Shown: piece by piece, positions 2,364 to 44,570 of the stretch | Position numbering within the stretch: position 1 is the first letter of the stretch | Layout of the letters: each line of letters starts with the position of its first letter | IMG/VR virus record: IMGVR_UViG_3300034072_000758 | Location: 310,001-374,000 of that record | Direction: 5' to 3' (one strand) | DNA length: 64,000 nucleotides | Notes under the pieces: generated by a model | The model's database searches: none | What the model saw: only the letters and a program-made list of their open reading frames with translations | What the model was told of the DNA's origin: nothing | Translations under genes and position numbers: made by a program

Positions 2364-2394
2364 TATTTATATTAGGATCGACTTTACCTGTCAA
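2364..2394 (-). promoter_or_regulatory. Composite sigma70 (TTGACA-N17-TATAAA) and T4-type late (TATAAATA) promoter of nadM-pncB
   Basis: Minus strand TTGACA 2394-2389, 17 nt spacer, TATAAATA 2371-2364. Confidence 0.7.
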
Positions 2395-35578: not shown

Positions 35579-35579
35579 G

Positions 35580-35652
35580 TGCCGGTTGCAGGAATCGAAC
35601 CCGCGACATCTTGTTTACAAAACAAGTGCTCTACCAACTGAGCTAAACCGGC
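35580..35652 (-). tRNA. tRNA-Thr(TGT), no encoded CCA
   Basis: Full cloverleaf; anticodon arm CTTGT-TTTGTAA-ACAAG. Confidence 0.93.
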
Positions 35653-35728: not shown

Positions 35729-35796
35729 GTGATTATATTTATCAAAAAGAAAATGTAGCGTCAATTAAAATCGACTTTTATCCACATTTTCTTAGA

Positions 35797-38629: not shown

Positions 38630-38703
38630 TGGAGCGGGTAGCGAGAATCGAACTCGCACGATCAGCATGGCAAGCTGACAGGCTACCACTACATCATACC
38701 CGC
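38630..38703 (-). tRNA. tRNA-Gly(GCC) with CCA
   Basis: GCGGGTA...TCAGC-TTGCCAT-GCTGA...TACCCGC-T-CCA. Confidence 0.93.
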
Positions 38704-38705
38704 GT

Positions 38706-38799
38706 AGCGGGGAATGCTTCTGTTGCCAAGTGCATCCCCAAAACTCCGGTTAGCGACAATTAAGCCGCCAGAGCCAAGACTACGTTATCGTTGTCAGTT
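38706..38799 (-). ncRNA. tmRNA-like fragment lacking the tRNA-like domain (tag frame DNDNVVLALAA* plus pseudoknot)
   Basis: Tag 38795-38760; GAGT..GGGGATGC-ACTT-GGCAACAGAA-GCATTCCC pseudoknot with the same architecture as in the main tmRNA; TAAATA at 38810-38805. Confidence 0.7.
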
Positions 38800-38842
38800 G
38801 ATTATATTTATCATAGACAAATATCAAACGCAACTAAAAAGT

Positions 38843-39214
38843 CTAATTTCTTTGACCACCATCAAGAATCAGATGAAAGAAAAAATCCTCCAACTCTTCT
38901 TCGGATTTCCAATTACGAATCTTATAACTAACGATGTCCCAATTATCCCAATCTTCGCTGGTTCGGTACAGCTTACCGTAACTTTGCCATTCTCCGCCCT
39001 TATGAGGCCCATAGGTGATGCTGATCACAAAGAACTCGTGGACAGTAAAAGTAAACCGGGTAAGACTGTGAATGTGCTCGTATATAGGTTTCTTGGAAGT
39101 CTTATGGTATCGGGCCATAATACGATATTCTTTATCGTCTACTGACAATAGATACCCATTTGGATACACATTCGTTTCCAATAGAATACCAGCAATGGCC
39201 TTGGTAATAATCAT
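38843..39214 (-). CDS. Hypothetical protein
   Basis: Coupled ORF. Confidence 0.6.
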   Translation of the reverse strand: MIITKAIAGILLETNVYPNGYLLSVDDKEYRIMARYHKTSKKPIYEHIHSLTRFTFTVHEFFVISITYGPHKGGEWQSYGKLYRTSEDWDNWDIVSYKIRNWKSEEELEDFFFHLILDGGQRN

Positions 39215-39645: not shown

Positions 39646-39735
39646 TGGCGGAAGCGGTGGGATTCGAACCCACGGAGGACTTTCACCCTCGCAGCTTTAG
39701 CAAAGCTGTGCTATCGACCACTCAGCCACGCTTCC
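39646..39735 (-). tRNA. tRNA-Ser(GCT) with CCA
   Basis: CAGCT-TTGCTAA-AGCTG, long variable arm, G73. Confidence 0.93.
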
Positions 39736-39737
39736 AT

Positions 39738-39926
39738 TTAAAAGTCGTTATTCAACGACTTCTGTTCTGTTGTCTCATACTTGTAGTTCTTTTTCAACCA
39801 GTCCCGACATATTTTCATATGCCAGTCCCGTTGATTATACGCCTTATCACTACTCAGTTCCACATAATCACTTGCGATATATTGGATAAGCTGTTCGGCA
39901 GTCAATTGATCTGTGTACTCACTCAT
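39738..39926 (-). CDS. Small hypothetical protein in the tRNA operon
   Basis: ORF between tRNAs. Confidence 0.55.
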   Translation of the reverse strand: MSEYTDQLTAEQLIQYIASDYVELSSDKAYNQRDWHMKICRDWLKKNYKYETTEQKSLNNDF

Positions 39927-39938
39927 GGACGTATCGTA

Positions 39939-40160
39939 TCATGTTAAGTCAGATTTTTCAATTTTTAATATAAGCAGTATTTTTTCATCATCGGTTAAGC
40001 TCTCAGCCATACTAATTTCCTCATATACTGCTGGACAACCGATACGAAGGGACGTTACTTCATCAAGCATAAGTTCGAACGTAAGTGTACCTCGCTCAAT
40101 TCCACTTACGTAGACTTGAATTAACATACACCAAGCTTTGAATATTTGCTCATTAGTCAT
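39939..40160 (-). CDS. Small hypothetical protein in the tRNA operon
   Basis: MTNEQIF...; ATG overlaps the CCA end of tRNA-Cys. Confidence 0.5.
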   Translation of the reverse strand: MTNEQIFKAWCMLIQVYVSGIERGTLTFELMLDEVTSLRIGCPAVYEEISMAESLTDDEKILLILKIEKSDLT

Positions 40161-40234
40161 GGAGTTCCCGATAGGATTCGAACCTACATAAGACGGGGTT
40201 GCAATCCGCCGCATAGCCTTTCTGCCACAGGAAC
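40160..40234 (-). tRNA. tRNA-Cys(GCA) with CCA
   Basis: GCGGA-TTGCAAC-CCCGT, U73. Confidence 0.9.
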
Positions 40235-40253
40235 ATAACCGGATTATACCGGG

Positions 40254-40342
40254 CGGACAATGGGGGATTCGAACCCCCGGAGGACATTACTGCCCTCACT
40301 CGCTTTCCAAGCGAGCGCGATAGACCGCTCTGCCAACTGTCC
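40254..40342 (-). tRNA. tRNA-Ser(GGA)
   Basis: CTCGC-TTGGAAA-GCGAG, long variable arm, G73 followed by CCC. Confidence 0.92.
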
Positions 40343-40600
40343 TTACTTTTGCCATATATGAGACTGTTCATCAACCTTTACCGGAAAGGTATGAACAGTC
40401 GTGCGAAAAAGAAAGTCCGATCCCATCTGACCAACAAGTCGATCAGTAAATGCTTCTGGGGTATAGTGATCGTTTACCCCAGCTAGGATCGCCGTCTTCA
40501 ATATGGCTTCGCATTCGTTGCTATCATCAAACTTATCCATATCGACAAACCATAAACGGCTATTCCGATCATTATAAGTTTCAACAACAGCATATATCAT
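40343..40600 (-). CDS. Hypothetical protein in the tRNA operon
   Basis: Coupled to the Nudix gene. Confidence 0.6.
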   Translation of the reverse strand: MIYAVVETYNDRNSRLWFVDMDKFDDSNECEAILKTAILAGVNDHYTPEAFTDRLVGQMGSDFLFRTTVHTFPVKVDEQSHIWQK

Positions 40601-41097
40601 TTTTGCCTTTCGAACCAGCTTTTAACCACATCGGTATGAGACCCGAAGCAAAGTTCTTCCGGTTCCAAAATGGCTCGGATTGCTGGCACTTCATTGGTTG
40701 GAACGAAGTCTTTCAAAACTTGTGCCATCGGAATAGGCGTCTTAGCTTCGCAAAAGGCCATCATATTACGACCGTTGTTGTATGAACTTATCAGACGAAC
40801 ATCAACCGGGTCAATAACCAGTCCAGTTTCTTCCACAAGCTCACGTACCGCAGCATGTTCGATAGAAGCGTCAGAAAGCTCTTGGAAGCCACCTACGAGC
40901 GCCCAGCCGTCCTTACAAGGTTGAATGCCTCGTTGGGCTACCAGAAGGCCCACAGAGCCTAATGGGAACGATACCGGTAAGAGAAGTACAGCAACCCCGA
41001 TTGGGTTGATGAATGTGATGTTGCCGCAGCTTGAACAAGCCTTGGGGTACTCAGTCGCGGTATGCTCGGTGCCGCAGAATTTACAGAACTTGTCCAT
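40597..41097 (-). CDS. Zinc-ribbon Nudix hydrolase
   Basis: FCKFCG..CSSCG..F.NP; WALVGGF...AAVRELVEETG. Confidence 0.88.
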   Translation of the reverse strand: MDKFCKFCGTEHTATEYPKACSSCGNITFINPIGVAVLLLPVSFPLGSVGLLVAQRGIQPCKDGWALVGGFQELSDASIEHAAVRELVEETGLVIDPVDVRLISSYNNGRNMMAFCEAKTPIPMAQVLKDFVPTNEVPAIRAILEPEELCFGSHTDVVKSWFERQK

Positions 41098-41122
41098 TTA
41101 TATCGCCAGAATTTTTACGGAG

Positions 41123-41207
41123 CGGAAGCGGTGGGATTCGAACCCACGGAACCTTACGGTTCGGAAGTTTTCAAGACTTCTGGGATAAACCTCTCCCCCA
41201 CGCTTCC
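41123..41207 (-). tRNA. tRNA-Ser(TGA), no CCA
   Basis: GAAGT-CTTGAAA-ACTTC, long variable arm, G73. Confidence 0.92.
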
Positions 41208-41214
41208 TTAAATA

Positions 41215-41421
41215 TTAGAAATGTCGTCTTCTGACTTTTCTTACTATAGAATCAACCGCTTTTTCCTCAGTCGGTTGGCCATTCACTATTATAACTACGG
41301 TGTCAGCCTGTCCACCTAAGTCAGTGACCGCCTCTTCCGCTTCGTATAATGCTTCTTTTGATGTTTCGGCGTTAATTTTAGATTTCGAACGAAAGACGTA
41401 TTCTACTTCAAATTCAGCCAT
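41215..41421 (-). CDS. Small hypothetical protein in the tRNA operon
   Basis: MAEFEVEYVF... after GAAGG. Confidence 0.55.
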   Translation of the reverse strand: MAEFEVEYVFRSKSKINAETSKEALYEAEEAVTDLGGQADTVVIIVNGQPTEEKAVDSIVRKVRRRHF

Positions 41422-41496
41422 AACACGTAGACCTTCAACACGATTATTACTCTTTTTACGTCTAACACGATGGTAAAGACTGGTCAATTTATTTTG

Positions 41497-41586
41497 TGGC
41501 GGATGGTGAGGGATTTGAACCCCCGGTTCCTTTCGGAACGCCAGTTTTCGAAACTGGTGCAATCAGCCGGACTCTGCCAACCATCC
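41497..41586 (-). tRNA. tRNA-Ser(CGA) with CCA
   Basis: CCAGT-TTCGAAA-ACTGG, long variable arm, G73. Confidence 0.93.
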
Positions 41587-41587
41587 G

Positions 41588-41662
41588 TGGACTATGATGG
41601 AATCGAACCATCGCTATCGTTGAGTTACAACGACGACCTATCCTTTACAGGTCTGATAGCCC
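41588..41662 (-). tRNA. Atypical tRNA-like RNA: Ala-type acceptor (G3.U70, A73) with nominal AAC anticodon
   Basis: GGGCTAT/ATAGTCC-A; 5-bp D stem GACCT/AGGTC; TCGTT-GTAACTC-AACGA; canonical T arm. Confidence 0.7.
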
Positions 41663-41673
41663 TTAATTTTAAT

Positions 41674-41762
41674 TGGGGGACGGGTGGGATTCGAACCCAC
41701 GGAACCTTCTACAAGACCCTCCCGCGTCAATCGGGACACCTTAAGCCACTCAGTCACCGTCC
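41674..41762 (-). tRNA. Atypical tRNA-Ser(TGA)-like gene (6-bp acceptor, C discriminator, CCA)
   Basis: GGACGG/CCGTCC-C-CCA; TCCCG-ATTGACG-CGGGA; long variable arm. Confidence 0.65.
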
Positions 41763-41767
41763 ATCAA

Positions 41768-41980
41768 TTAAACCGTCTGTTCTTCGATCAAAGACATATG
41801 CTTCCTGATCCAACGCATAAAGAACAATCCTTTATCCTTGGTCAAGAAGCGGGCAGTCCCGCAATCGGAGATCGGAACCGGAAACTCAAACCCATCTTCG
41901 CAGCGATAGATCAAGTTGCCGTCCTGATAGTGAACGAAGTTTACTTCGCCTTTTACTCTTGTTTTAATGTCAGCCATCAC
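41768..41980 (-). CDS. Small hypothetical protein in the tRNA operon
   Basis: ..GNLIYRCEDGFEFPVPISDCGTARFL..DK..FFMRWIRK; AAGGG SD. Confidence 0.7.
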   Translation of the reverse strand: MMADIKTRVKGEVNFVHYQDGNLIYRCEDGFEFPVPISDCGTARFLTKDKGLFFMRWIRKHMSLIEEQTV

Positions 41981-42000
41981 TTTACCCTTTCATTCAGTGA

Positions 42001-42084
42001 TGGTGTGTCGTGATGGATTCGAACCACCGTGCCTTTCGGATGGGGGTTACAACCCCACGCAATCAACCGCTCTGCCAACGACAC
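42001..42084 (-). tRNA. tRNA-Tyr(GTA), copy 2, with CCA
   Basis: TGGGG-TTGTAAC-CCCCA, long variable arm, A73. Confidence 0.9.
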
Positions 42085-42096
42085 ATAAAGGATTAA

Positions 42097-42220
42097 TCGA
42101 CCCCTCGCCTTCGGGCTTTTACCGCTGGTCATTAGGCTACCGGAGAGGAGTTTCCGTAGCCTCAGCTTACTATGTGCTCACCCCGTTTGGAGGCATACCC
42201 CTACTAGGTTAAAGTAAGCA
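42097..42220 (-). ncRNA. Candidate structured RNA between the two tRNA-Tyr genes
   Basis: Stems GCTTACT/AGTAAGC, AGGCTAC-GGA/TCC-GTAGCCT, GACC/GGTC; no ORF. Confidence 0.45.
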
Positions 42221-42227
42221 CTTCATT

Positions 42228-42312
42228 TGGTGTATGGTGCTGGATTCGAACCAGCGCGCCTTTCGGAACAGATTTACAGTCTGTCGGTATCGACCAACTC
42301 ACCCAACCATAC
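42228..42312 (-). tRNA. tRNA-Tyr(GTA), copy 1, with CCA
   Basis: ACAGA-CTGTAAA-TCTGT, long variable arm, A73. Confidence 0.92.
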
Positions 42313-42313
42313 G

Positions 42314-42385
42314 TACTCGGTAATGGAATCGAACCATTATCTTCGGAGCCACAATCCGACGCTCTTACCGTTGAGCTAACCAAGC
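42314..42385 (-). tRNA. tRNA-His(GTG), alphaproteobacterial type without G-1 (G1.U72, A73)
   Basis: U at -1; GCTTGGT/ACCGAGT-A; TCGGA-TTGTGGC-TCCGA. Confidence 0.9.
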
Positions 42386-42404
42386 ATAGTTATAAGATTC
42401 ACAA

Positions 42405-42416
42405 TGTAAAAGAACA
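42405..42416 (-). promoter_or_regulatory. boxA-like antitermination element
   Basis: TGTTCTTTTACA versus rrn boxA TGCTCTTTAACA, preceded by a hairpin (42415-42466). Confidence 0.5.
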
Positions 42417-42467
42417 TGTCTCATACACGATACAAGAAGAGGCTTCTTGCTTCATTAATGAGACATT

Positions 42468-42544
42468 TGGGGTGACCAACGGGATTCGAACCCGCGCTTG
42501 GAGATTCACAGTCTCTCGTGCTAACCGCTAACACTATGGCCACC
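42468..42544 (-). tRNA. tRNA-His(GTG), canonical G-1:C73 type with CCA
   Basis: G-GTGGCCA/TGGTCAC-C-CCA; anticodon loop CTGTGAA. Confidence 0.92.
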
Positions 42545-42554
42545 ATAAAGATCG

Positions 42555-43167
42555 CTACAGAGCTAACATCAGTCGATCAACTCCAATCGCCCAACCAATA
42601 CCTTCTGAGTATCGGCCACCACCGGCAATCTGTTTTTGTGCTCCAAGTTTGGAACACTCTGCTTCGAAACCTTCTTCAACATAATAGGTCAAACCGCGCT
42701 TAACCGAGTCCGTGAATGAGTATTCGACGCCAAGCTTGTCTAAACACAACTTCAAAAGCCTCTTGGCCTCTTCTGTCGAATTGTCAACTTCACCGAGGAT
42801 TTCCACACCAAATTGGGTGAACTCTCGATAACGACCAGCTTGAGGTCGTTCGTAGCGATAGCACCGGGAGACGTAGAAAATCCTCTTGGACTTACTTGTC
42901 TTTGACCAGTTATCCCGCCAAAGTTCTTGGACTAAGCCGGTGACTTCGGGGATCAAACATACCGGACGGTTTGCCTTATCCTCGAAAGCCCACATTTGAT
43001 TGATGATCTCAGACCCCGCCTTGTCGATGAACGTTTGTTGTTCCCACAAGGCTGGAAGAATCACTTCCTCAAATCCAGCTTCAATGAAGAGACCCCCTAA
43101 GAGCCTCGATTACACGGACGTAGGACTTAGCTTCGTCCCCTTCCAAAATTCTCGTACCTCGTAACAT
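42555..43167 (-). CDS. hisS: Minimal catalytic-domain-only histidyl-tRNA synthetase (about 203 aa); needs a +1 shift near 43093-43101
   Basis: MLRGTR..; GFEEVILP (motif 1), LIPEVT, YRYERPQAGRYREFTQFGVE (motif 2), RGLTYY, GGGRY, GWAIGVDRL (motif 3); no insertion or anticodon-binding domain; frame break at CTT AGG GGG T. Confidence 0.85.
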
Positions 43168-43183
43168 TCCATTCTCCAAAAAC

Positions 43184-43208
43184 AAAAAACCCGCCAAGAC
43201 TGGCGGGC
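43184..43208 (-). terminator. Attenuator terminator T2
   Basis: CCCGCCA-GTCT-TGGCGGG-TTTTTT. Confidence 0.85.
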
Positions 43209-43211
43209 ATT

Positions 43212-43239
43212 AAAAAACCCGCCTAATCGGAGCGGGTTT
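43212..43239 (-). terminator. Attenuator terminator T1
   Basis: AAACCCGCT-CCGATTA-GGCGGGTTT-TTT. Confidence 0.85.
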
Positions 43240-43277
43240 AGAAGCTTCTATGATTTTCAGTTAATCATATAGTCGCG

Positions 43278-43340
43278 TCAAAACCCACCCTTGCTAGAGT
43301 GCGAATAAGAGCAGCTATGTGAATACGACATGAAAGTCAT
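43278..43340 (-). CDS. Attenuator leader peptide MTFMSYSHSCSYSHSSKGGF
   Basis: AAAGGA SD; ATG ACT TTC ATG TCG TAT TCA CAT AGC TGC TCT TAT TCG CAC TCT AGC AAG GGT GGG TTT TGA; 3' end GGGTGGGTTT complementary to the T1 left arm. Confidence 0.85.
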   Translation of the reverse strand: MTFMSYSHSCSYSHSSKGGF

Positions 43341-43420
43341 TGTAGCAGTTCCTTTGTTACCAGCGGGGGTGTGATAGGGCGCACCCTATAACGACGACTT
43401 TTTCCCTCGCCATCTTTTTC

Positions 43421-43450
43421 TATTTAGCATCTTTCGCAAAAACGTGTCAA
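43421..43450 (-). promoter_or_regulatory. Promoter of the leader-hisS-tRNA operon
   Basis: TTGACA (43450-43445)-N18-TAAATA (43426-43421), also readable as TTGACA-N16-GCTAAATA. Confidence 0.7.
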
Positions 43451-43463
43451 TTTATTTTTTAAA

Positions 43464-43766
43464 TTAATTTTTGCGGGCGTTGTAGACGAATCTCCCAACC
43501 TCTTTATTATTATGAGAAGCGATAACAATGGTCGTCGCAAACGTGTCAATATCGGAGTTATCATCAACCGGTGGCTGAGACATTGTTAACTTATATCCAT
43601 ATTTTTTAGATAAATCGACAAACTCTTTCAATTGCTGACTAGAATTTCGTCCAGCAATACCACCAAAATCAAGACGCAGATAATTATTACTTGGGTTGAT
43701 GTCTTGAACCGAAGCCTCATTCAACACCATCTTGTTTTGAATTTCTCTATACCATTCGTTGTCCAT
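43464..43766 (-). CDS. Hypothetical late protein
   Basis: TAAATA-N5-ATG; VLNE motif. Confidence 0.65.
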   Translation of the reverse strand: MDNEWYREIQNKMVLNEASVQDINPSNNYLRLDFGGIAGRNSSQQLKEFVDLSKKYGYKLTMSQPPVDDNSDIDTFATTIVIASHNNKEVGRFVYNARKN

Positions 43767-43814
43767 GCTTGTATTTATTTGACTTTTAGTAAAGTTGTAT
43801 GTATAACAATATAC

Positions 43815-44570
43815 ATGAAAAGATTACTGATCCTCAGCCTTGTGCTGGCCTCCTTCTCTACACCTTCCTATGCGGCTCAAAAGAAGCCGTTGCCTAATGC
43901 TGTCTGTGCGCCACTAATCAAACATGTCAGCGTCATTCCGGGGCAAATGATTTGTCGTGCTGGGTACGTGGCGATCTATGACGCTCGCAACCGTATTCCA
44001 GAAATGGTGATATACAATAATGACCGAGCAAAGCTGTCAGCTTGTGGGAAACGTACTGATCGGTTCCAGCGAGACGAGAGTGTCAGTGATGGTGCTCTCC
44101 CAGCAGACTACACCGGGACAGGATATGATCGCGGTCACATGGCTCCGAACAATGACATGATTTACGATCCAGTCATTGAAGAAGAGAGCTTCATCATGAC
44201 CAACATTGTTCCCCAAAAGCCAACCCTCAATCGTGGCATCTGGAAGGAACTGGAAACTCATGCTCGTGAAAAATCATACGCGGTGGGTAATCTAACAATT
44301 ATCACCGGGGTCATCTATCGCCCGAATAATGCTCGCCTCAAGGGGCGGGTTCTGATCCCAGATGGCTTCTATAAAATATTGGTCGATCATAAAGCTAAGA
44401 CGACCGAGACATATATCATGTATCAGAACGACAAGACCGGGCCTATTTCATCCTATCTGAGCACTCGAAAAGAAGTCCAGCGCTTGACCGGCCATCGTTT
44501 TAACTTGGACGGTTATCAAGACGCCAAGTGGACAATCAGTTATCGAAACATCCACAAGGAGTGTAAATAA
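43815..44570 (+). CDS. Secreted DNA/RNA non-specific endonuclease (NucA/EndoG family)
   Basis: Signal peptide MKRLLILSLVLASFSTPSYA; DY...GYDRGHMAP, SF.MTNIVPQ...LNRGIWKELE, IPDGFYKI. Confidence 0.9.
   Translation: MKRLLILSLVLASFSTPSYAAQKKPLPNAVCAPLIKHVSVIPGQMICRAGYVAIYDARNRIPEMVIYNNDRAKLSACGKRTDRFQRDESVSDGALPADYTGTGYDRGHMAPNNDMIYDPVIEEESFIMTNIVPQKPTLNRGIWKELETHAREKSYAVGNLTIITGVIYRPNNARLKGRVLIPDGFYKILVDHKAKTTETYIMYQNDKTGPISSYLSTRKEVQRLTGHRFNLDGYQDAKWTISYRNIHKECK

Follow-up and report, generated by a model that had tools for sequence, protein, structure and literature searches.

A predicted leader-peptide attenuator ahead of a matched tRNA array in a large phage

Why would a bacteriophage place a tiny open reading frame (ORF), dominated by codons for only four amino acids, ahead of a block of transfer RNA (tRNA) genes that decode those same codons? 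The question is raised by a 64-kb stretch of DNA from IMG/VR virus record IMGVR_UViG_3300034072_000758 (hereafter called the window), in which the short ORF, a gene resembling hisS for histidyl-tRNA synthetase (HisRS), and the tRNA genes occupy one strand between positions 39646 and 43450. Portal and tail sheath genes mark the window as tailed-phage DNA. An IMG/VR contig of 517 kb (L001) is nearly identical to it, and the closest cultured relative of this phage is Sinorhizobium phage Phosso (469 kb). A nucleotide search of the region against phages with megablast returned zero matches. We consider it very probable that a multivalent, ribosome-mediated leader-peptide transcription attenuator controls both the phage tRNA block and the mini HisRS-like gene, as argued below from the codons of the leader, the predicted folding of its RNA, and the corresponding loci of related phages.

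Leader, tRNA array, and predicted RNA switch

A first-pass annotation of the window had listed a promoter, a Shine-Dalgarno (SD) sequence, a 20-codon leader, two intrinsic terminators, hisS, and a tRNA array on the minus strand, and all of these parts are present in that order (coordinates below refer to this strand unless marked otherwise). A sigma-70-type promoter can be read in the sequence as TTGACA-N18-TAAATA (43421-43450). The SD element AAGGA (43350-43354) lies 9 nt ahead of the AUG of the leader ORF, which comprises 20 codons followed by UGA (43278-43340). This arrangement of promoter, SD, and short ORF ahead of the regulated genes is the one expected of an attenuator. The related motif TTGAC-N17-20-TAAATA occurs three times in the window, compared to 0.16 expected occurrences. 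The other two copies are found at 35736-35764 (minus) and 2364-2394 (minus); one extra copy lies ~85 nt upstream of a tRNA-Thr(UGU) gene (35579-35652), and a leader would not fit between them.

Codons 5-16 of the leader (43293-43328) form a control region of 12 consecutive codons that specify only Ser, Tyr, His, and Cys, and the encoded peptide is correspondingly rich in these residues. As listed in the first-pass annotation, the codons are, in order, UCG UAU UCA CAU AGC UGC UCU UAU UCG CAC UCU AGC. Downstream lie nine canonical tRNA genes that were called in agreement by ARAGORN and Rfam: tRNA-His(GUG) at 42468-42543 and 42313-42385, tRNA-Tyr(GUA) at 42228-42312 and 42001-42084, tRNA-Ser(CGA) at 41497-41586, tRNA-Ser(UGA) at 41122-41207, tRNA-Ser(GGA) at 40252-40342, tRNA-Cys(GCA) at 40160-40234, and tRNA-Ser(GCU), the last of the matched set, at 39646-39735. 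The array covers 3.5 kb, with small ORFs between the tRNA genes.

The correspondence between core and array is as complete as had been claimed. All 12 core codons can be decoded by array tRNAs under standard wobble rules, each canonical tRNA has at least one cognate codon in the core, and all four Ser isoacceptors are sampled, via UCG, UCA, UCU, and AGC. A cluster of control codons cognate to the products of the operon, which is another characteristic of attenuators, is therefore found in the window. When all six frames of the 64 kb are searched, the longest other run of array-decodable codons is seven, and the leader holds the sole run of eight or more. Runs of at least 12 are expected by chance at a frequency of 1.3e-4 per window, and chance is excluded as the source of this codon run.

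Two intrinsic terminators separate the leader from the genes, again as expected of an attenuator. Terminator T1 (43212-43239) is formed by segments 3 and 4 of the transcript, AAACCCGC and GCGGGUUU, which pair as a hairpin of -13 kcal/mol that is followed by U6. Terminator T2 (segments 5 and 6; 43181-43208), whose left arm is GCCCGCC, has a stem of eight pairs, six of them GC, followed by a T run. Two upstream segments lie within the leader ORF itself. Segment 2, the putative antiterminator 5' arm (A)GGGUGGGUUU (43281-43291), corresponds to the final leader codons and terminates at the stop codon. Segment 1, CACUCU (43296-43301), corresponds to codons His14-Ser15, and in minimum free energy structures of the ribosome-free transcript its pairing partner is AGGGUG within segment 2. 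The resulting 1:2 helix can be modeled as the counterpart of the trp 1:2 hairpin.

The first-pass annotation had also proposed that the 3' end of the leader forms 10 bp with the left arm of T1. This pairing, between GGGUGGGUUU (43290-43281) and AAACCCGCUC (43239-43230), was reproduced, and two of its pairs are G-U. The duplex has a predicted energy of -12.4 kcal/mol, compared to -6.3 kcal/mol in shuffled sequences (p=0.01). Moreover, the T1 right arm (GGCGGG) is complementary to the T2 left arm (CCCGCC).

The consequences of ribosome position were explored by folding a transcript that ended at the T1 U tract, in which the nucleotides covered by a ribosome were masked for each A-site position in turn. 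Equilibrium folding without a ribosome gives a probability of T1 formation of 0.90. This value falls to 0.00-0.10 when the A site is on any of codons 5-14, and is 0.93-0.96 when the A site is anywhere from codon 15 to the stop. For the window leader, the folding model thus yields a mutually exclusive antiterminator helix that depends on where the ribosome stalls. The predicted stalled state consists of the antiterminator together with a 4:5 hairpin, and T2 is left unformed (P = 0.13). Because pairing of the T1 right arm with the T2 left arm would remove T2 in this state, the second terminator is compatible with attenuator control. In these calculations, the window leader acts like a textbook attenuator, and the trp/his-type logic that had been suggested for it is supported both by this modeling and by the comparative data presented below.

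These features suggest the following mechanism. Transcription by host RNA polymerase would begin at the sigma-70-type promoter, with a ribosome loading on the 20-codon leader. Given an ample supply of charged tRNAs for Ser, Tyr, His, and Cys, the ribosome would reach the last codons or the stop, where it either covers segment 2 or permits helix 1:2 to re-form behind it. T1 would then fold and stop transcription, with T2 as backup. A shortage of any one of the sampled aminoacyl-tRNAs would stall the ribosome within codons 5-14 and leave segment 2 free to pair with the T1 left arm. The freed T1 right arm would pair with the T2 left arm, neither terminator would form, and the polymerase would enter the hisS-like gene and the tRNA genes. 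Once charged, the new tRNAs would restore leader translation and shut off the operon, thereby closing the loop. Since the operon products are the molecules being sensed, the circuit would be closed-loop, and its simplest reading is negative feedback in which tRNAs are made when decoding slows and are no longer made upon recovery. As in all leader-peptide attenuators, the sensing of aminoacyl-tRNA would take place at the A site of the ribosome. We infer leader translation, stall-controlled readthrough, synthesis of the tRNAs from a single promoter, and the purpose of the circuit from the arrangement of the parts.

Known regulatory RNAs were considered as possible identities for the region. A T-box or another leader already represented in Rfam was rejected because no match exceeds threshold: there is no T-box match at E<=1 between 38000 and 44000, and the leader families that appear are below their gathering thresholds (trpB motif RF04312, 34.4 versus 59 bits; Trp_leader RF00513, 21.6 versus 41 bits). 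The remaining Rfam leader families, including those for His, Thr, and Leu leaders, have zero matches in the region.

Leader classes in relatives

If the leader senses the tRNAs encoded behind it, its codons should change as the tRNA set changes, and the first-pass annotation had proposed this comparison. Relatives were gathered with the main part of the hisS-like gene product as query, which yielded 26 viral and 80 metagenomic loci, and their genomes were read in windows of ~12 kb. The layout of promoter, SD, leader, and terminator recurs in 13 further distinct relatives, and the leader codon set tracks the downstream tRNA set in 14 distinct relatives that fall into seven classes, with imperfect matches in some. 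One or two terminators follow the leader in all relatives. The same promoter motif is located ahead of the leader in L002, L003, L004, L007, and L013, and an SD sequence precedes the leaders generally, with the exception of that in the AT-rich L021. An exact search with a 17-mer from the leader core found only the three contigs already known and one chance match within a gene (L030).

Four distinct phages (L002, L003, L004, and L007) carry homologous Ser/Tyr/His/Cys-rich leaders. In all four, the leader is located at the 5' end of a Ser/Cys/Tyr/His tRNA block, and hisS lies 0.7-1.8 kb downstream of the leader, within or after the array. In L004, the leader core contains codons for Ser, His, and Cys and none for Tyr, and the array encodes four Ser, two His, and one Cys tRNA, likewise without Tyr. 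ARAGORN missed the Cys tRNA of L004, which was confirmed by Rfam, and called the Tyr tRNA of L007 only at a relaxed threshold.

Other classes sample entirely different amino acids. In diverged loci of a His/Cys/Val class (L094, L099, and L112), the leader sequence HHCVVV(VV) is followed by tRNAs Val-GAC, Val-UAC, Val-CAC, Cys, and two His. A Leu/Pro/His/Tyr class (L083 and L103) has the leader sequence LPLPLHHLPLYP, which precedes His, Pro, and Tyr tRNAs and five Leu isoacceptors. An unbiased upstream scan, which recovered the known leaders again, revealed a Leu/Tyr/Pro/Met/Cys class (L013), where LYPMPCYP precedes tRNAs Tyr, Pro-UGG, Leu-GAG, Pro-CGG, Met, and Cys. The leader of a Leu/Asn/Pro class (L014/L028) samples UUA, UUG, CUA, and CUC ahead of tRNAs Leu-UAA, Leu-CAA, Leu-UAG, Leu-GAG, Pro, and three Asn. 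A run of His codons directly before the hisS-like gene of L069 defines a His-only class. The seventh class has a Thr/Ile/Ala/Arg leader (L021/L029) and is weak as a member.

The specificity of these associations was examined with a leader-by-array matrix. Matched pairs have decodable runs of 12, 13, 11, 8, and 12 codons, whereas mismatched pairs have runs of 0-5. The exceptions are L014/L028 and L021/L029, whose runs with their own arrays are only four and only two codons, respectively. Among 120 permutations of the class representatives, the observed run total is reached by one, which is the true assignment. Covariation of leader codons with tRNA sets, whose absence would have counted against the attenuator according to the first-pass annotation, is thereby clearly supported. 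The peptide sequence of the leader is not conserved among class members; its composition alone is. Also, the predicted partner segment of the T1 left arm always lies just past the control codons in relatives and varies together with the arm, and L002 has the same T1-right:T2-left arrangement as the window.

Several low-complexity ORFs were rejected as leaders. The sequence "MPLLPLIP" in L008 falls within a tRNA-like T-arm, "MLKAILK..." in L018 is situated upstream of its promoter, and several others either lack a promoter, SD, and terminator context or have no matching tRNAs.

A number of observations weigh against attenuator control as a complete account of these loci. Only Arg of the Thr/Ile/Ala/Arg leader is matched by the tRNAs downstream of it in L021/L029, which are four Arg tRNAs and one CAU tRNA; no Thr, Ala, or ordinary Ile tRNA was found within the 1.6 kb available past this leader. 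The L003 leader has two Cys codons without a canonical Cys tRNA, and a degenerate tRNA-like gene occupies the expected spot. Likewise, L014 has three Val codons, and no Val tRNA was seen there. Complementarity between the 3' part of the leader and the T1 left arm is greater than in shuffled sequences for 12 leaders (Fisher combined p ~5e-5), a value to be read in light of the non-independence of these leaders and the mononucleotide shuffle that served as the null. In equilibrium folding, the switch is partial for L002 and L014, and there is little or none for L003, L004, and L007. Leaders of 28-53 codons have their stop codon far downstream of the antiterminator arm, and so masking by a ribosome at the stop is not applicable to them. 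Switching in L003, L004, and L007 and by the long leaders would have to be kinetic, as argued for trp.

Leader control is also far from universal in these phages. Many of their tRNAs have no leader, as exemplified by Lys genes and arrays of ~40 tRNAs; no leader was found at the very large mixed arrays of relatives. The Thr and Gly tRNAs of the window are without one as well. Phosso has scattered tRNAs, and no leader was found in its first 60 kb, which makes this cultured phage unsuited as a ready test system for the attenuator. Finally, co-transcription of 3.5 kb from the leader promoter is an assumption, and internal promoters are conceivable among the weak promoter-like sites that occur within the operon at chance frequency. 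No minus-strand terminator that would mark the 3' end of the transcription unit was found after tRNA-Ser(GCU).

The frame-split hisS-like gene

The first gene past the terminators (42555-43167) had been annotated as hisS. A gene of this type is present; what it encodes is a HisRS core of ~200 amino acids that is split by a frameshift, and not the full enzyme. The N-terminal piece, in frame 0, consists of 28 codons and ends with CUU CAU UGA (43081-43167). The main piece, in the +1 frame (42555-43088), represents the class II HisRS catalytic core (Pfam tRNA-synt_His PF13393, 6e-14). Alignment with the Thermus thermophilus enzyme (1adj) covers residues 41-157 and 231-315, skips residues 158-230, and ends at residue 315 of 421. 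With neither the insertion domain nor the C-terminal anticodon-binding domain, the gene product is, judged from its sequence, a HisRS-like core rather than a full synthetase.

The junction between the two pieces resembles a programmed frameshift site. In the window it reads AGGGGG-UCU-CUU-CAU-UGA, and the candidate +1 cassette (43084-43098) can be described as AGGGGG, a 3-nt spacer, CUU in the P site, and the His codon CAU in the A site. The frame break is kept in 89 loci at 57-99% protein identity, and 10 loci are in-frame and have no cassette. Relatives among L002-L113, Phosso (L027) included, carry the cassette at the same site. This conservation rules out a sequencing error or a pseudogene as the cause of the break. 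Transcriptional slippage on the G5 run was ruled out as well, since GGAGG, the version present in most relatives, is no homopolymer.

A comparison of 64 distinct junctions reveals which features are maintained. Codon 27 is CUU in 43 and GUU in 21. Codon 28 is a His codon in every case (CAU in 46 and CAC in 18), and GGAGG, GGGGG, or GGGAG is located exactly 3 nt upstream in 46. A stop codon in the 0 frame follows 1-6 codons on in 60 of the junctions, and four are without one in the stretch examined. A +1 slip on CUU preserves the spacing from Leu-Arg to Gly-Phe that is seen in the in-frame homologs. In addition, the Phe codon of the new frame is UUC in 64/64 junctions, which leaves the 0-frame His codon intact.

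These characteristics invite comparison with prfB, which codes for RF2, and with the hungry-codon shift of Ty1 at CUU-AGG-C. All have CUU in the P site and a slow codon in the A site. The hisS-like cassette shares further features with prfB, including an SD-like GGGGG or GGAGG 3 nt upstream, a nearby 0-frame stop, and a requirement for the +1 frame to produce the full-length protein. The autoregulatory logic is also alike, in that the gene product relieves the slow step, which is a prediction in the case of the hisS-like gene. Unlike prfB, where the A site holds a UGA stop codon decoded by the product of the gene itself, or Ty1, where it holds a rare Arg codon, the cassette presents a His codon (CAU or CAC). 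It differs further by having GUU in place of CUU in a third of cases and by residing in a truncated HisRS core. By its sequence, the cassette is prfB-like in design without being a member of the prfB type. The full-length hisS-like protein is likely to be made mainly when His-tRNA arrives slowly, and the cassette is probably a recoding switch that senses His-tRNA and constitutes a second translational sensor in the operon.

Purpose of the proposed circuit, known systems, and neighboring features

How far do these data constrain what the leader controls and why? One could propose that the leader regulates the hisS-like gene alone and that the tRNAs are independently expressed passengers. In the window, the hisS-like gene is indeed the first gene past the terminators, the pure His leader of L069 lies directly before hisS, and aminoacyl-tRNA synthetase genes under leader control have been documented (PMC8079986). 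This proposal is already contradicted by the comparative data and we regard it as very unlikely: the leaders of L002, L003, L004, and L007 precede tRNAs and have hisS 0.7-1.8 kb farther on, those of L013, L014, and L083 precede arrays while hisS is distant or upstream, and the Ser, Tyr, Cys, Val, Leu, Pro, Asn, and Met codons would be needless. Still harder to sustain is the idea that the short ORF encodes a functional micropeptide, such as a Cys/His metal binder or the precursor of a modified peptide, that the terminators are ordinary, and that the codon match is a coincidence. Richness in Cys, His, Ser, and Tyr is typical of such peptides, but composition differs wholly from class to class, always in step with the tRNA set, it is composition and not peptide sequence that persists within a class, and terminators placed between promoter and genes would be senseless without antitermination. 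Given also the chance expectation noted above for the codon run, we assign almost no probability to this idea.

A different question is whether the attenuator serves specifically as an inducible counter-defense that replaces tRNAs depleted by host anticodon nucleases or tRNA-modifying toxins. Defenses that cleave tRNAs, among them PrrC, PARIS, and a retron PtuAB system, are known to be countered by phage tRNAs. The codons of the sensor correspond to exactly those tRNAs that it controls, the arrays are split into small, separately gated sets as would suit tRNA-specific defenses, and a second, predicted His-tRNA-dependent switch is present in the same operon. However, nothing in the sequence links the sets to a known nuclease specificity, the sets jointly span at least 11 amino acids, and the same stall would result from starvation for amino acids, shut-off of the host, or a mismatch in codon usage. 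Because the stall trigger is common to anticodon nucleases, host shut-off, tRNA decay, codon-usage demand, and starvation, counter-defense is only one possible use of the attenuator, which would serve just as well for plain feedback between tRNA supply and demand, and we hold the dedicated role tentatively, as an idea with a minority chance of being correct.

We lean modestly toward a broader interpretation, in which these phages possess modular, closed-loop control of translation capacity. Each array would carry a leader "barcode" that samples its tRNAs isoacceptor by isoacceptor, accompanied by a mini-HisRS made via a His-codon-gated +1 frameshift. Charged pools would be measured and only the missing tRNAs topped up, including after an attack by a tRNA-targeting defense. 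On this account, extra tRNAs are probably produced by these phages only in response to a shortage at the ribosome. Such a design would explain why huge-phage tRNA genes can occur in small amino-acid-specific blocks, and it offers a testable answer to the question of when phage tRNAs are synthesized, namely on demand and not constitutively. It also ties into the question of anti-phage defenses that target tRNAs.

Leader-peptide attenuation has been textbook material for fifty years, with known examples in amino-acid biosynthesis and at a handful of synthetase genes. The enterobacterial ilvGMEDA (Leu/Val/Ile), thr (Thr/Ile), his, trp, leu, and pheA attenuators resemble the window leader in having a promoter-proximal ORF, clustered control codons, overlapping 1:2, 2:3, and 3:4 hairpins, and an intrinsic terminator, and the ilv and thr leaders likewise sense several amino acids with one leader. 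The controlled genes there encode biosynthetic enzymes, whereas here they encode tRNAs, such that the sensed molecule is the product. Codons of the window leader sample each isoacceptor once or twice instead of forming long homopolymeric runs. Two coupled terminators, a phage setting, and interchangeable classes matched to arrays further distinguish the phage system.

Leader-peptide attenuation also controls E. coli pheST. Together with the leaders of Streptomyces synthetase genes, this case is similar to the phage system in that a component of translation is governed by ribosome stalling at cognate codons, and the His leader before the hisS-like gene of L069 is exactly of this type. Each synthetase leader responds to one amino acid and controls one synthetase, whereas a phage leader would sense as many as five amino acids and control as many as 13 tRNA genes. 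The Streptomyces leader peptides precede leuS, trpS, alaS, and thrS (PMC8079986). T-box RNAs are alike in responding to poor charging of a specific tRNA by antitermination of translation-related genes, but they bind uncharged tRNA directly, involve neither a ribosome nor an ORF, and recognize one tRNA each. Phage tRNA clusters, as in T4, T5, mycobacteriophages, and huge phages, are similar phage-borne arrays that provide codon supply or replace tRNAs cut by defenses. To our knowledge, these clusters are described with ordinary early or middle promoters and without a charged-pool sensor of their own.

Full-text literature searches, whose coverage excluded most subscription journals, turned up no description of phage or bacterial tRNA genes controlled by a leader peptide, in agreement with the statement of the first-pass annotation that no phage attenuator over a matched tRNA array has been described. 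A separate search of the same literature for frameshifts in histidyl-tRNA synthetase genes was likewise negative. The mechanism itself is classical; the novelty lies in its use on tRNA genes, in the multiplexing of control codons, and in its occurrence in viruses. If the proposals made here are correct, these would be the first tRNA genes under leader-peptide attenuation, and the hisS-like cassette would be the first version of the prfB frameshift switch that operates on a sense codon and senses aminoacyl-tRNA. The leaders would also give synthetic biology compact natural sensors of individual aminoacyl-tRNA pools, and the codon content of each class can be read straight from its sequence.

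Additional RNAs and genes were encountered in and around the arrays. The window array contains two noncanonical tRNA-like genes, a Ser-UGA form with C37 (41763-41675) and "Val-AAC" (41662-41587), that were called by ARAGORN only and are without Rfam support. More such genes occur in L028 (697-798), L029 (7184-7262, 7861-7929, and 8712-8800), and L003 (5173-5255). In the window and in relatives, they sit within or at the head of arrays, and their anticodon loops are peculiar in having C37, a length of 6 nt or 2 nt, or the anticodon AAC or AAU; one form is 102 nt long, and some remnants consist of a T-arm only. Amber-suppressor-type tRNAs with a CUA anticodon (labeled Pyl by ARAGORN) were found in L002 (10358-10511, minus), L003 (~11770, minus), and L093 (4006, plus), and they may indicate stop-codon reassignment in these phages. 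In several relatives, tRNA-Lys(CUU) is preceded by a conserved promoter and a ~110-nt untranslated element that has complementary 5' and 3' ends and no leader ORF (L016, 3365-3490; L018, 3105-3235; L093, 3305-3420; L105, 3335-3455). This may be a different type of control element.

Among the proteins encoded within the window array is a 166-residue NUDIX hydrolase (40597-41097) with an N-terminal Cys-rich, zinc-ribbon-like motif; five small ORFs of the array gave zero family matches. A tRNA-Gly(GCC) gene (38630-38703) lies 0.9 kb past tRNA-Ser(GCU). Beside it, positions 38709-38842 match the Rfam model for alphaproteobacterial two-piece transfer-messenger RNA (tmRNA) with 39.3 bits (E 9e-9), compared to a gathering threshold of 50. 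A weak permuted-tmRNA match spans 38760-38863, and ARAGORN calls zero tmRNAs there. The match at 38709-38842 may represent a tmRNA fragment carried by the phage and is a hint that the host is an alphaproteobacterium. On the opposite strand, just upstream of the leader promoter, a 312-residue ORF (43632-44570, plus) has, by eye, a signal-peptide-like start and a motif of the DRGH type, as is typical of endonucleases that cut DNA or RNA non-specifically.

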